Part shown: positions 3,601-61,575 of the stretch, piece after piece
Layout of the letters: the number at the start of each line of letters is the position of its first letter
Numbering within the stretch: position 1 is the stretch's first letter
Source: Podarcis gaigeae
Lineage: Eukaryota
DNA length: 64,000 nt
Direction: 5' to 3' (one strand)
Assembly (NCBI GenBank): GCA_964106915.2
Contig: OZ066920.1
The notes under the pieces: model-generated
The model's database searches: none
What the model was told of the DNA's origin: nothing
Seen by the model: only the letters and a program-made list of their open reading frames with translations
Position numbers and translations under genes: made by a program

Positions 3601-4539
3601 TGTGGCGGTAGCTACACTGCTCCATTGCTACCTGCCATGTGTTTGGATTGCTCTGGCAATCAGGCAGAGACCCAAGAGTACCTTCATATAGATATGTGGC
3701 TGTACCTCCTATTATCAGAAGTAAAAGTAAAAGTAAAACATGACCTAACACTGTGCGTAAACATATCAGACAGTTTTCTTTAACATACGCCATTGCTAAA
3801 GAAAGACATAAAATATGTCAATATTTATGACATCTCAGACTAAAACACATGGTTCTACTTTTTTATTTTAAAAAAATGCTGTTTTAGACTTAACAGCATA
3901 AGATTTTAGAAGATTTGCTAGGCATTTGGTATAGTATGATTAAGTCGTAGCACATGATAGTGGTTGCAAATTCATAAATAATGTGCCAGGCTTTCATGGT
4001 AATCTCAACCAAGACTTCAGCATGATTCCAACATTATGTATTCATTCAGTCATTCATTCATTCATTCAAGTAGCAGTTCAACAAGAGTCCCAGCTCACAA
4101 CATACATTAACGGTCACAGAAGCATTAACAACCCACTGAGCTACATGCATCACAGGCACTACAACCATAGGTTTGAATCAGAGAGCAGACAGCTACATCC
4201 AGAACCCAAGCAACCAAAGTACACGAATTCAAGAAAACCAAAAGCCAGATATACTCAGTTTTACTTTACATCCCATCAATGGGCAGCAAACCCTATGTAA
4301 AGGATTGCAATCTGGGGCCGCTAAAAACCTGCATGCTTGCTTTCAGTGGCTGCTCTTGAGTAAACACTGCCCTGATGACAATAAAAACCCCGTACAATGC
4401 ATGCAGTTATGCTACAAACAGTGGAAGATTACACCCCCACCCCTCCCTCTCTGCTGGAAGGCACCACAGCCGGCATTGATCGTGGGTCACCTCCTACCAC
4501 CAGCTTCCTTTTCCCCGATGCACTGGCAAGCAAGCAAGC

Positions 4540-5500
4540 AAGCAAGCAAGCAGGGCTCGCGAGGCCAAGGGAAACGGGCTTCTCCCTCACCATCTATCTG
4601 GAAGCAGGGGGAGGGGGGTGGGGACCAGAAAGAGAGGAGAGGCGCGCGGCTGCGCCCTGTGACCTCGGTGGGACTCCCTCCTCCTCCTCCTCCGTGCGCA
4701 GCTGTGGAGGCAGCCGCGAGTCCTGAGCTCCTCCGGCGTCTGGTTGGGGTGAGGGACCCAGGCGCGAAGGCGACGCTGGGAAGGGGCGCGTGGTGCGCGC
4801 GGGCAAGGAGGGAAGGAAGGATGCAGAAGCAGCAGCAGCAGAGCCTCCTCAGGACCAGACTCGGAGCTGGAGAGGAAGTGGCGGGGCGGGGGGGGGGGGA
4901 GACGGGGACGTGGTGGCCCCTCGAAGCCGCCCGGTTCCCCGAGGCTGCCTTGGCGAGGAGGTCAGGGGGACTCCCCCTCCTTGCCTACCTTGACTGTCCG
5001 CCCTCCGTGGGATGGAGGCAGGAGAGCGAGAGAAGCTTTGGCGAGGGCGAGGACCAGCCACCGGGCGCTCGAGGCGGCGGTTGAATGAACTGAATGGGCT
5101 GGAAACGCAGCCAGCGCGCGGCGCCGGAGGAGGAGGAGGAGGCGGGGGGGGGTGACGCACGCGAGCGAGCGCGCGCGCCCGGCGGAAATTCCCGCTCTCG
5201 CGCCCCCTCGCTCTCTTGCGCGACGAAGCCACCAACTAGCAGGGGGAGGCGGGGGGGGGAGAGGTGAGGCGCACGTGACGAGGAGTGGGGGTGGGGGCGG
5301 GAGGCCACGGTATTCTCTCTCTCTCGAGCGCGCGCCCAGCATTCCACCCTGCTGCAATGTAAAACGACCCGGGCTAATTAGTGGCAGTGGCGGCGTCGGC
5401 AGGAACAGGGAGGAGCTTTCTTCTTCTTTTCCTCCTCAAGTGGATCGTGTGATCTGTTGCTTGCAGACTCTTGCAAGCGCGGCGGGTGCATCTCCCTTCC
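4540..5500 (-). promoter_or_regulatory. CpG island: promoter and non-coding first exon(s) of a minus-strand gene, probably LPIN2
   Basis: Abrupt GC/CpG-rich block in an AT-rich background; GC box 5294-5301; E-box CACGTGAC 5272-5279; CRE-like TGACGCA 5153-5159; kB site 5184-5193; minus-strand donors AAG|gtaggc (4989/4988) and ATG|gtgagg (4591/4590). Gene identity rests only on recalled MYOM1-LPIN2 tandem synteny. Confidence 0.75.
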
Positions 5501-5670
5501 AGAGTGCATATACAGTAGCCAGCGCCAGCGTGTGCATTGTGCTTCGGGCGTGCAGAAGCCCTATATACAGTTGCATATTATAAGCTACACATTAACATTC
5601 CTGTTACATGTTATGCTTCGAGCCTGGAAGGATAAACACCCACCGCCCTCCACGCAGTGAAGACTTCACC

Positions 5671-5671
<1 letters not shown>

Positions 5672-5699
<28 letters not shown>
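5672..5699. repeat. A28 homopolymer just upstream (in minus-strand terms) of the CpG island
   Basis: Seen directly. Confidence 0.95.
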
Positions 5700-5701
<2 letters not shown>

Positions 5702-7754
5702 CAATCTAGCATGGAGCTGAACATTTGGAGGGCTTCTATCGACTCTCATGTCTGATTTCAGATGAAAGTACTGATAGGTATTGTATTCTCAATGTGAGCT
5801 GCCAGTGTGGGTCCCCGTTTTTTAATATCTTGCTTTTGTTTTTCTTTGTCAATTTAAAACACTTAATAAAATACAAAGCATTCTTGTTAAATGAGAACAT
5901 GCTTGTGAGTAATTCATCAAATGCATCTCTGTTGCACATGTGTATGTTCCTCCAGGGTATTCCTTTTGCATCACCTGCTCCTGCTATCATGCATTCTCTG
6001 TATATTTTCTGCATTTGGCATACAAACACAACAATATGCTCCATTTTATTAATGTTGCATGACTGGCCCACCAGTGAAGCAAGGTGAGGCAACTGCCTCA
6101 GGCAACAAGATCCACAGGGGCAGCAGATCCTAATGTAGATCTTTCTTCCTCACCTTGTTGCTCAAGTAGATCTTCATTCACACCTTCTTCCCTGGCAGTG
6201 AGGGAAGCAGACTATAACAAAGCAATATAAGTGATGATTCATTTCAGTTAAAAACTCTTCATAATTGACAGGATAATTTATACACCCGTTGCTATGCATA
6301 CAGTATATAGCAGGCACTGATCAGGAGCAAGCAGAAACATATTTAGGATTATCTGGCCTTTCGCCTTCCTTTTTTTTGCTATCAGGATACATCTTTTCTG
6401 TGGTGGGTTCATCTGAGATCCCTAGAAGTTATTTGATGAAAATACTACTACAATGTAAGTGCAGGTAGATGCTGTAAAACTCCTCCAAATGGCAGAGGCA
6501 AAATGTTTAAACTTTGCAAAGAGGTTTTGGCATGTTTCCTGTTGTGCAGGAGACACTCGTAATAATCCACTGTATAGTTTACTTACAGTACTGTGGTATA
6601 CATCTCTACTCAGCAGTATGTCTTTTTGTCTTTAAGGGGGCTTACTGGCAAATAAGTGGGTTCTAGATAGCAGGCCAGACTTTGATTTAGGGTTGACACT
6701 GGGGAAAACAGGGTTCTTATGCCATTGATAGTTGTATCTCCACAATCAAAACCAGGTTTTGGGAGGTGTGTGCATGGGAGCAGCAATGACAGTACTCTCT
6801 CTAATTTTGTGTTATGTCATGCCCTCGTAGCAGCCATTTTGTAATGAACCCGTATAACTTTCTCAAAATTTGAAATGTATCCACTGGTCCAGAAAGGTGG
6901 TTGACCCCTGTACTGCAGCATCACTTGTGGTGATCCATTGTGGTGAGGTTCTCCTCACAAGCCACTTACTTGGTAAGGCTGCTTCCAAATTTAATAGTGC
7001 CTCCATCTCCTACACAGCCATATATGTGTCAAATACTACTGTGTGGTGCTCTGTTCTCCCTCCTCGTTTTCTCTTCTCCTTTTCCTCTGGCTAATATAGA
7101 TTGCAACTTTAAGGCTTCTGGGAAGACATTCTATCCCTTTTCCACTTCAGTTTCCACCATGAGAAGACTGCCTATAACCATCTTGTACTGGGAAACACCA
7201 GCATGAATAAGTCAATAATTATTTTAAAATGTCAATAAGTGGAATGATTAAGCTACTAAGTGGGCTGCATTTGACTTTGTTAGTAACCATGTTATAGTCC
7301 ACAGCAGAAGGCCTGAGGCAAGTGCACACAGACCTGGTACACAAGCTAAAGCTTGGGTGTATAGGTTTTTTATGACTATTTATTTATTTAGCAGTGTGTG
7401 GAGGTTTGCATTAAAAAATAAAGCTACAGAGTGGTTTGGTACTGCCTTGTTGCTTTATATAGTGATTTAATATCAGTGTGTAATTGCTTGTGACAATTTG
7501 TGGGGTGGTATCACAGAAACAAGTGCTGAAATAACTGGGAAATACTCTCTATCTATCTTAAGTAAAGGCACATTAGGTACCTGGAAAGCAAAAAACAATA
7601 TGTTCAGCCTTTGTGCTTTATCTTATCAGCATTTCTGTATCAGTACTTCTGTATGCAAAGTCTATATTATGCTGTATATGAAAACCCATCCTTCCCCTGC
7701 ACCAGTTCTTGCAATGGTTAGCCACAATATATATAAATCCAGTTGATGCATACA

Positions 7755-9680: not shown

Positions 9681-10872
9681 GCCAGTTTGCAAATAATACA
9701 GCACACATAGGTATACAGAATGAATAAATCATTTATCCGGCTTGATGCTGACATCATGCTGTTGAAGTACTACAAATGCATAAGAATTTCAGCTTTTATT
9801 TATTGGAAAACAGCCAGTCTGACTCTCTCCTAGTGCTGCAGTGTTGCCTGCCTTTTCTATTTCTCTGGGACTTGTGCCAAAGGAGCACTTTAAGTATTAC
9901 AGTGTAAATGTGTAGCTCTCATAAATTTATAGATATCTTTTAAAAGTGTCACTTTTCAATGACTGTGTACCAAATGCTGATTTAAAAACAAAAATGCTCG
10001 ATATTTTAAAAGTTATGATTTTAACCCAGTCTCTAGCTGCTAGAAGTTAGAACTGACTCACTGATTTTTTAGTACTTGAACTTGACAATCACATTACAGT
10101 TCGGTTTTATGAGATTACAGAAGAGTGGGTATTCAATCTGGTCTTTATTTTAAAACATGTTAATCCATATGGCATGCATGCTCTGCAAATTTATTTTTAT
10201 TACATCTCAGGTTCTCAATATTCCATGAAGCAGAACAGCCATAATGATGGATATGAAATCCTTGTTAGCATTCAAATATACTAAATTATATTTATTACAC
10301 ATCTATCCACATCTTTTTTGCTGTTCGTTGAATTACATATAATAACTTATTTATATTTATAAGAATACCATTAGAGCATAGGAAGAACCTTGGAAGCTGT
10401 CTTATAAGTGCACCACATACACACCTTACATTTCCCCCAAAGCATACTGGGAACTGTAGTTTACCCCTCACAGAACTACAGTCCCCAGCTCCCTTACAGT
10501 TCCCAAGATTATTTAGTGAAGGGAATTGTGCTTTAAACGTGCAGTATGTATACAGCCTATGTCAGACCAACGTTCCCTTTAGCTCTGCGTTCTCAACACT
10601 ACCATGGAAGGGTGAATCTAATAGTTACAGTACAGCAGGACAATCAAGTTTGAGTTTATGACAAAATGCTGTGTTCAGTGAAGCCATTCTCATTTCACCA
10701 CAGACATAGTACTCGGCATGAAATGCTATCTAATATCAACACTATACGTTTCATAATAAGAGTAATATAACAACAATGATCCTATGTTTTAACTCAGTCT
10801 TTTCTCCATGAATCTCAAGAATTTGTCTGCTATGCCATTCTGTCTTACTACCCAGAACATTTTGTGATCCCT

Positions 10873-10946
10873 TTAGTTTGACCAGCTGTCTTTAGGGTCA
10901 TCTCCATCTTCTACAATTGGATTTTCATTTGGATCAGACATCTCTT
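10873..10946 (-). other. Candidate alternative terminal exon of MYOM1 (EEMSDPNENPIVEDGDDPKDSWSN*)
   Basis: attattgcttcag| acceptor, acidic open frame ending TAA (10873-10875); minus-strand AATAAA signals downstream at ~10144-10201 and ~9795-9804. Confidence 0.5.
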
Positions 10947-11846
10947 CTGAAGCAATAATCTATCTTACTTATGGCTTAATGAAATCTGATTCAAGGAAAA
11001 TAACACATGGTTCATGTTGGGGGGGGTGCCCTCACACACTTTCTCTTTAAAGGGACATGTGGGGTTTATTTGTCTCTTCCCATAGTGCTAAGTATTGTGT
11101 TTACCTGAGATAGCACATGATCAGAAGAGTTATGAAAGTCCTTGTCACTAAATTATGATGGGCTCTTCTTGGCAAGATTGCTGACTTCACTATGGAGCAA
11201 CTAAGAAGGATCACAAACATGGCCTTCCCTTGTTATGAAACACCTGCTGTGTTAAAGGAAACTGATATTTATTTGTGCACACCAACCATTTCGATTCATC
11301 TTCCTGAAGTGCTTTAATTTGAGCAAATAAAAATGAAGCAATTTCTGAAACAGTACAAACTGCTAGGATCTATTTCACACACATTTACTTACTTTCTTTA
11401 CTTAATACAATTTCAGTTATGATTACACTGCAATTTAAGTCCATACAGAAGGTTCTCTTGGCCAATTTAGTATAAAATAAAAAAGACTTGCCAGCTGCTG
11501 CTTAAAATAATCAAATTTAACTAGCTGATTTTCCAAACTTGGAGAATCAGGAGCTGTTGTTTAGTCACAAACCACATTTATAATGTAGCAAATAAGGGAA
11601 CACTCTGACCCAGCTAAGCATCTTAAATTATTAATTTCAATGGGAAAATGAAACGTGTCTAATACTCTGTGACTGGAAGCAAAGGGACTTTGAAGGTGCT
11701 TACTCTCCCCGTGTCTCTGCTTAAAAACATTTCAAAAGGCTGAAGAAAAAAACAAACCAAAAAGGCAAAGTACCTTCAGGTTACTTTGGGAAGAAATAAA
11801 GAGTTTTTCTTCTTGGAACTAGATCTAAGCAGCTAAATATTTTTAC

Positions 11847-11950
11847 CTTCTTTCTTCCCTGAGGCTGGTTTCTTTTTACCTATGGCTACTGTATCTAGGC
11901 AAATTCCATGCATCTCAGCAACGAGTGTAGCCAAGCCAGTTTGTTCATCT
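11847..11950 (-). other. Candidate alternative C-terminal exon of MYOM1 (DEQTGLATLVAEMHGICLDTVAIGKKKPASGKKE)
   Basis: ctgactgtatctcatag| acceptor, GAAG|gtaaaa donor, open frame, joins in phase 1 to 10873-10946; not experimentally supported. Confidence 0.5.
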
Positions 11951-12604
11951 CTATGAGATACAGTCAGCTACAGGAAAGCAAGAAGAACGCACAAACAAGG
12001 AAGTCCTGTTAAAAATAGCAACCGTATAATTTGCAAGTTGTGATTAAAGATTCAAAGAGCTGCATTCAGTGAGCGGTAGACTATTTTTCTCTCAGTTTCC
12101 AATGCCGTAACAAACTATGGCTAACATGAACCAGGAAATTGAGGAAGGAATCAGGTACACAAGCACATGTTGACAGTCAAAGCCATGTCTGAAGTAAGCC
12201 TAGGCCTGGAGGAAATATAAAGGTCATTTATCCCTGGAGACTAGAATTCAATAAAACAAACCCAAAGAGAAACAAGTCTTAGCAATTTACTTGAGTTCAC
12301 CTTATCCAAAATTCTGTCTCCAGTGTTACCCAAAAGTTTAAAACTGTTCATAGGCTATCCCCCATATTGTTGCTATGGACCATACATTTAATCTTATACC
12401 ACTATAAGAGTTGCAATTCCCAGCAGCCTTAATAAACTACAGTCAGACTGAATCAGGCAGAAGTTAGTGTAGAATAAATAAAATTGCCAGCACCTCCTTT
12501 CTCTGTGCTGCATTGAAGACCTAAGTGAAGATGTTAGGCGTGGGGTGATGTTAAACTAAAAGGGATGGTAAACAGCCATCAGAGTAGTGAGCAAGTAAAC
12601 AAGT

Positions 12605-12644
12605 CACACGCACACAAAACAAGGCGAAAGAAAAGTGTTTTATT
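12605..12644 (-). terminator. MYOM1 proximal polyadenylation site (3' UTR about 500 nt)
   Basis: AATAAA at 12639-12644 (minus) followed about 20 nt later by the GU-rich element TGTTTTGTGTGCGTGTG. Confidence 0.75.
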
Positions 12645-13134
12645 TCTTTTTGAATACTGAGGAGGGTTCAGTTTTTTTTCACTGACGTTAGTTTGTATTA
12701 ATATCATGTCAACACAAAACATTTGTTTGCTTTAATATCTGTTTTCTAGAGTCCTATCCTACACTACATTCAGTTTATACTAGATTACCAGCAGGCTCAA
12801 ATCTAGATTCCTGGTGAGAAAATCTTCTCCAATAAACGATTGTAATTTTTTCCATCCTTTCACTCACATCACTGATTAAATGACTTGCTTAAATATTATG
12901 CTTCTGCGTTAAGAGCATTATCCTATTATGCTTCTGAGTTAAGTTCATGTGACAGAAAGCCAGGCTGGGAGTGGGAGCATTCCCCATTTTTGCCTGATCA
13001 CAACATCTAAAATGAAGTGAGTGGAAGGGTTCAGATCTACTTCATACTCACAGGCAAAACCATTTACACACACATATTATTAAACCAGATAGAACTCTAC
13101 CTCTCTGCAACACTTGTCCATCTTAGCTTTAGCT

Positions 13135-61575
<48,441 letters not shown>

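Follow-up and report, generated by a model that had tools for sequence, protein, structure and literature searches.

Chicken myomesin ends in different C-terminal sequences in heart (H) and skeletal (S) muscle (Bantle et al. 1996, as summarised in PMC8900313). The two variants diverge 'after domain My13', the H form continuing for ~90 residues and the S form for ~20, and the divergence is described for avian muscle only (PMC8900313). The window analysed here, a stretch of 64,000 nucleotides of lizard DNA, carries on its minus strand the 3' end of the myomesin-1 (MYOM1) gene, and the original prediction had placed behind the polyadenylation site of this gene three exon-like units, a, b and c, regarded as the squamate H exons. 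The locus therefore raises the question of whether a lizard possesses, or once possessed, a second tail of this kind, and if so how it would be joined to the rest of the protein. The coordinates of the features discussed are collected in Table 1.

The product of the terminal MYOM1 exon comprises most of the immunoglobulin (Ig) domain My13 followed by an S-type tail, and translation stops at the TGA at 13137-13135. The exon follows an acceptor AG at 13436-13435 and has a phase-0 start. A spliced RNA contig from a related organism (run X2), which covers 12673-13436, runs on into letters that match window positions 18293-18322 exactly; because an AG is shared at both exon ends, the true junction is 18291|13434, also in phase 0. 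Homologous open reading frames (ORFs) from many vertebrates yield I-set Ig matches in Pfam (PF07679) and possess the same short VSVFIPEE…K-rich tail, and the same order of My13 Ig fold, VSVFIPEE…K-rich S tail and stop is found in the terminal exon of the window. In the AF2 model of the exon product (mean pLDDT 83) six strands are predicted, the last of them at residues 65-73 (GTETSDLTI), and the S tail is disordered from residue 84 onward. The ORFs listed from a word search with the terminal exon (18) and from a profile search (the best 120 of 171) all had S-type tails, and no alternative tail was found among them; giant multi-Ig proteins made up the best 150 matches of a representative search with this exon, in which no MYOM1 entry was obtained.

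The proximal poly(A) signal of the gene is an AATAAA at 12644-12639. High-depth RNA contigs end at about 12673-12722 (terminal-exon depth 2139 in X2 and 1182 in run X12), and the similarity of the 3' UTR to three other squamate loci (L001-L003) fades at 12616-12586. Relative to the window, the related species carry insertions of 84 letters (X2) and 16 letters (X1, X2 and X12), and X12 lacks 30 letters of the 3' UTR; the positions concerned are 12407/12408, 12153 and 12894. Much further downstream, a GC-rich island at ~4400-5600 (GC content 0.55 in 4001-6000) contains low-complexity ORFs only, and probably marks the CpG-island promoter of the gene that follows downstream on the MYOM1 strand.

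Table 1. Features at the MYOM1 3' end, in window coordinates
Feature	Position	Strand	Basis
Penultimate MYOM1 exon, 3' end, donor AAG|GTACAG, phase 0	18291..18322	-	Exact match of an X2 contig loose end; sequence
MYOM1 terminal exon, coding part	13135..13434	-	Translation; spliced X2 RNA contig; Pfam of homologues; AF2
Inactivated internal 5' splice site, ATAAGT	13213..13218	-	Codon table (18 loci); alignment; relative L012
S-type 3' UTR, end approximate	12620..13134	-	RNA contig ends; UTR similarity; hexamer position
Unit a, rejected as exon	12494..12520	-	Weakly conserved non-coding, just past the proximal poly(A) site
Exon b', 121 nt, revised from unit b	11847..11967	-	Conserved island; splice sites; open frame; dN/dS versus L001
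Candidate terminal coding exon c, phase-1 entry	10873..10946	-	Sequence; translation
Stretch transcribed continuously, unspliced	10296..12677	(strand not shown by contigs)	RNA contigs of close relatives

All motifs and letters ascribed to the three units are present in the window. Unit a has the acceptor cttag and the donor GAG|gtgctg, unit b (11950-11847) the acceptor catag, the donor GAAG|gtaaaa and, at 11879, another GT, and unit c the acceptor cttcag and a terminal TAA. The AATAAA signals that had been listed along with them were likewise found (12644-12639, 10201-10190, 10149-10144 and 9804-9795), and a further one, absent from that list, is located at 10296-10291. However, this pattern by itself is not above chance: with the weakest predicted acceptor and donor as thresholds, and with splice scores taken from a crude home-made matrix, the 1.8 kb scanned (12630-10800) contains 16 exon-like open units, as against 12.8±5.4 in first-order Markov simulations. 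Translated exon by exon and unjoined, the units read as predicted, namely SSMQHRER (a), DEQTGLATLVAEMHGICLDTVAIGKKKPASGKKE (b) and EMSDPNENPIVEDGDDPKDSWSN followed by the stop (c). The joint reading frame proposed for a-b-c, on the other hand, has no entry in frame from MYOM1, because the two upstream donors, that of the penultimate exon and the conserved internal one, are both in phase 0, and unit a, when read in that phase, leads into a TGA at the start of unit b. Unit a was ruled out as an exon in any case, since its acceptor AG is replaced by TA or TG in L001 and L002 and its donor GT by AA in L001; on these letters, the unit is a product of chance.

A different picture emerged for unit b. 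The comparison DNA consisted of short Logan contigs that code for the same terminal exon and were fetched via protein matches; one of them, from a squamate (L001, contig SRR13336339_324512), whose terminal exon is 75% identical in protein to that of the window, is from the one other species that covers this unit, while no other species' contig covers unit c and the P0018 contigs stop 83 nt past the stop codon, short of unit b. Downstream of the 3' UTR the identity between L001 and the window is 0.3-0.48, and an island of 0.65-0.75 stands out at 11996-11817. Both sequences have there a polypyrimidine tract ending in tgtag|CT, then the donor AAG|gtaa, and the conserved tgtag|CT places the start of the exon in the window at 11967, which is 17 nt upstream of the acceptor originally assigned; the catAG of the latter reads catAA in L001. 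The exon redrawn in this way, designated b', has the acceptor ttcttcttgctttcctgtag|CTG (AG at 11969-11968) and the donor AAG|gtaaaa (GT at 11846-11845), and is 77.5% identical to L001 by blastn. It enters in phase 0 and leaves in phase 1.

From 11967 a single frame is open in both species, encoding LTVSHRDEQTGLATLVAEMHGICLDTVAIGKKKPASGKKE in the window and LIVSHKDEITDLATIVTEAQGLALSNKKNASGNKK in L001, and the 15-nt gap between the two within b' is in frame. In this frame dN/dS is 0.29/0.76 (~0.38) and the mismatches fall 9/6/16 on codon positions 1/2/3, a skew that with 31 mismatches gives a chi-square p of ~0.08; the two other frames contain stops and have dN/dS >1. The splice sites, the frame and the substitution pattern of b' are thus those of a conserved coding exon in the comparison with L001, and there is good evidence for such an exon here, short of conclusive because it comes from one species pair and 31 mismatches. 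No candidates were returned when the aligned b' ORFs served as the query of a word search, and Pfam returned no match for b' or c. The original prediction had accordingly found something real but had drawn it wrongly: a conserved coding-like exon does lie past the S-type poly(A) site, whereas unit a, the 5' boundary of unit b and the frame of entry do not stand, and the conservation of splice sites and frame extends to b', in one further squamate, but not to unit a.

Unit c is plausible as the partner of b'. It would encode (E)EMSDPNENPIVEDGDDPKDSWSN, with its stop TAA at 10875-10873. Among the substitutions listed between the window and the related organism A, one falls inside c and is synonymous, and the listed substitutions leave gaps around b' (11746-12021) and c (10897-11081), the larger of which has p ~0.09 after allowing for the number of gaps. 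If real, these gaps hint at continuing constraint, which argues against a dead relic; constraint on b' and c may thus continue, although this is only a hint. The predicted lengths are 40 residues for b' and 24 for c, or 64 in sum if the pair were entered at the donor in My13 described below. Bird-like contigs, which extend 0.9-1.45 kb past the stop, contain no b'- or c-like sequence. A candidate exon in birds (L005 ~1383-1567, L004 ~4340-4490) was rejected, as it shows 1-nt indels between species and no conservation at the protein level.

The point at which such a tail would be entered was sought in the terminal exon, using a table of donor codons over 18 loci whose taxon labels were guessed from the tail sequences. 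At the Thr|Val-Ser-Val point of My13, eight other species have the codons ACN|GTA AGT, which form a perfect phase-0 donor and match the phase-0 opening of b'. The carriers of GTAAGT are the squamates L001-L003, the bird- or turtle-like L004, L005, L006-L011 and L013/L014, and the frog-like L018, and the synonymous sites beside the hexamer vary among them. The position of the last predicted strand (residues 65-73) means that the donor sits at the end of the domain. The distribution of GTAAGT over squamates, bird- or turtle-like and frog-like species fits an H/S-type switch that extends beyond birds. No H form is known for the frog-like species, so the hexamer may be kept for other reasons.

A working donor directly after My13, as an H variant would have, is absent from the window, which reads ACT ATA AGT: a G to A change at the +1 position (13218) turns GTAAGT into ATAAGT and Val into Ile, so that the internal donor is dead in the window lineage. 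The same ATAAGT is carried by a relative (L012) with 97.4% DNA identity to the window, and thus does not represent an assembly error. The dead donor is probably shared by organisms A and D, the sources of the RNA described below. Inside the terminal exon there is no other good donor in phase 0. The sequence AAG|GCATGA before the S stop (13135-13143) consists of GCA or GCG (Ala) and TGA in every sauropsid contig compared; it gives no sign of ever having been a GT donor, and as a GC donor it would be weak. Entry in phase 1, from a donor TAA|GTGTGT at 13215 to an acceptor at 11948, was ruled out, since the first base of the terminal exon is 13434, not 13436, and its phase is 0.

Other loci vary at the same place. 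The squamate L015/L016 reads GTC AGC and the mouse-like mammal L017 reads GTC AGT. The former differs from GTA AGT by two synonymous changes, both of which weaken the donor, and in L015/L016 the switch may have been lost a second time among squamates, independently of the window lineage. In the bird-like RNA of L013 (470-500) and L014, two bases of an AG run are missing by comparison with L005, so that the S tail ends early (…VSVYIPEEERV and stop) while GTAAGT is intact; these would be contigs of a species with a truncated S tail.

Transcription of the downstream stretch was assessed with RNA contigs of older runs, unassigned to tissue or strand, two of them from organism A (X1 and X2) and one from organism D (X12); as contigs, they drop rare variants. 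In X2 the contigs 10296-11548, 11522-11762 and 11748-12677 have depths of 360-435, compared with 90 in the upstream intron and 59 at 9700-10325; the downstream stretch thus has 4-5 times the intron depth and up to ~20% of that of the terminal exon. In X12 the depth is 41 over 12722-9700 and 18.6 in the upstream intron. In all three sets the interval 12722-9700, or large parts of it, is continuous without a joint. The true junction at 13434 shows as a branch point in X2, whereas no branch points were present in X2 at 13219, 13141, 11967, 11950, 11847 or 10946. The splicing proposed through units b and c was therefore not borne out in this material, as there is no joint at 11950, 11847 or 10946 in three contig sets from two related species, and in no species was b' seen spliced to a donor in any read or contig. 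The unbroken contigs, together with a depth above that of the intron, indicate that in these relatives the stretch is transcribed without detectable splicing, and it looks like read-through or a long 3' extension.

Two details of the RNA contigs lie near the far end of this stretch. Many loose ends and raised depth occur at 10430-10495 in all four runs, including that of a distant species (X9), and the interval is probably a SINE-like repeat. At 10296, the first base of an AATAAA, the X2 depth drops from 435 to 59, and the X2 contig leaves the window sequence and continues for >255 further letters that are not in the window; the 30 letters after 10296 were searched for and are absent. The break may reflect inserted sequence in organism A, a splice, or the point where a transcript ends.

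The reading to which about an even chance is given is that an H-like alternative tail module exists in squamates and was silenced in the window lineage by the one donor mutation, its exons being left within an unspliced 3' extension. Exon b', probably together with c, would supply the downstream part of an H/S-type switch at the MYOM1 3' end, working as a composite terminal exon, and the ancestral layout would persist in other squamates. Where the internal donor is ignored, translation would proceed to the S stop, giving the short tail VSVFIPEE…KKKKA, and polyadenylation would take place at the proximal site. Where the donor is used, transcription would continue past the proximal poly(A) site and the donor would be spliced to b', whose first residues (LTVS or LIVS) would replace VSVF and complete the last beta strand; b' would then be spliced to a terminal exon, presumably c, giving a longer, charged tail. 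In the window and its close relative, the +1 G to A change would leave read-through transcripts unspliced, as there is no other good in-frame donor in the exon, and these would form the long 3' extension. Of the claim that the units are the squamate H exons, what is supported is a conserved coding-like exon past the S-type poly(A) site, whose proposed entry donor is mutated in this very lizard.

It is unlikely that the tail is still in use in the window lizard, being reached by another entry in a tissue or stage outside the sampled RNA, although two routes are in frame with the acceptor at 11967. The penultimate donor AAG|GTACAG could be spliced directly to b', skipping the My13 exon and yielding a myomesin without its dimerising domain, a loss that speaks against this route. 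Alternatively, the weak phase-0 GC site AAG|GCATGA could extend the S tail by b' and c to ~89 residues, a size that would agree with the one published for chicken H (PMC8900313). The -1 base of this site is G in the window and L012 and A in other squamates, which is favourable, but its +4 and +6 bases are poor. Continued use would also agree with the intact splice sites and frames of b' and c, and with the avoidance of b', c and their flanks by the substitutions listed against organism A; intact ORFs, however, say little here, because the mutation is young (the window and L012 differ by 2.6%). The X2, X12 and X1 contigs moreover run unbroken through 13141, 11967, 11847 and 10946, and the 13434 junction was seen as a branch in the same material.

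It is equally improbable that b' is no exon at all but a conserved non-coding element, such as one that regulates the proximal poly(A) site or forms part of a long 3' UTR, with a coincidental frame and with a and c as chance ORFs. The unit count that does not exceed chance, the exclusively unspliced RNA coverage, the lack of a Pfam match and the p value of the codon-position skew would all agree with such an element, and the flank of unit a is weakly conserved too without being an exon. Nevertheless, b' combines in both species an acceptor, a donor, a single open frame, a gap divisible by three and a dN/dS <1 amid surroundings of 30-48% identity, and its phase fits the conserved donor hexamer. 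It is very unlikely that b' and c belong to another transcript. They could then be part of the gene at the ~4400-5600 island, as a 5' or non-coding exon upstream of it, or of an independent lncRNA or small ORF that might even run on the opposite strand. In favour of this, the contigs do not show the strand, the GC-rich island lies ~5 kb further on and an X2 contig departs at 10296 into non-window letters. Against it, the downstream depth tracks the MYOM1-rich runs and drops about seven-fold near 10300, before the island, and both the strand and the phase of the splice signals and open frame are those of MYOM1.

The silenced-module reading can be set beside several known systems. As in the chicken H/S pair, the alternative sequence would begin directly after My13, where the donor lies according to the end of the last AF2 strand; in both cases the S form is short, lysine-rich and mammal-like, and the second form would be the longer one and would depend on transcription continuing beyond the S poly(A) site. 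The lizard case differs in a predicted length of 64 residues rather than ~90, in the mutated entry donor, in that no spliced RNA was seen, and in that it concerns a squamate, not a bird; the suggested correspondence to chicken H is one of position and layout.

Composite terminal exons, in which splicing at an internal donor and polyadenylation at a proximal site compete, are known from the secreted and membrane forms of immunoglobulin mu and from calcitonin/CGRP. The layout proposed here would be the same, with the exon either read to the nearby stop and poly(A) site or cut at the internal donor and joined to downstream exons with a poly(A) site of their own. This is a mechanistic analogy only, and regulation by cleavage factors or tissue is not part of the likeness. 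Alternative polyadenylation giving a long 3' UTR isoform matches the continuous RNA of the relatives, whose coverage extends beyond the proximal site as far as ~10300 and reaches up to 20% of terminal-exon depth, but a plain long UTR leaves the frame-preserving conserved block with its splice signals unexplained. EH-myomesin, which has an embryonic-heart insertion between My6 and My7, is likewise due to a tissue-regulated alternative exon of the same gene that encodes a disordered segment; that exon, however, is an internal cassette far upstream, conserved in mammals, and is unrelated to b' and c in position and sequence.

A wider reading, which is held more tentatively and falls somewhat short of an even chance, is that the heart-type tail represents an old tetrapod, or at least sauropsid, composite-terminal-exon switch that was lost independently in the window lizard, in the squamate with GTC AGC and in the mouse-like mammal with GTC AGT, and that its downstream exons may survive as intact, transcribed fossils. 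My13 is the C-terminal dimerisation site of myomesin, which cross-links thick filaments, and a tail added at this domain could alter the mechanics of the M-band or its binding partners. A squamate exon in the right phase, together with a donor hexamer found from frog-like to bird-like species, would push the origin of the switch much earlier, and closely related lizards with and without a working donor would give a natural comparison. The locus would also illustrate how a single base change can convert coding exons into part of a long 3' UTR.
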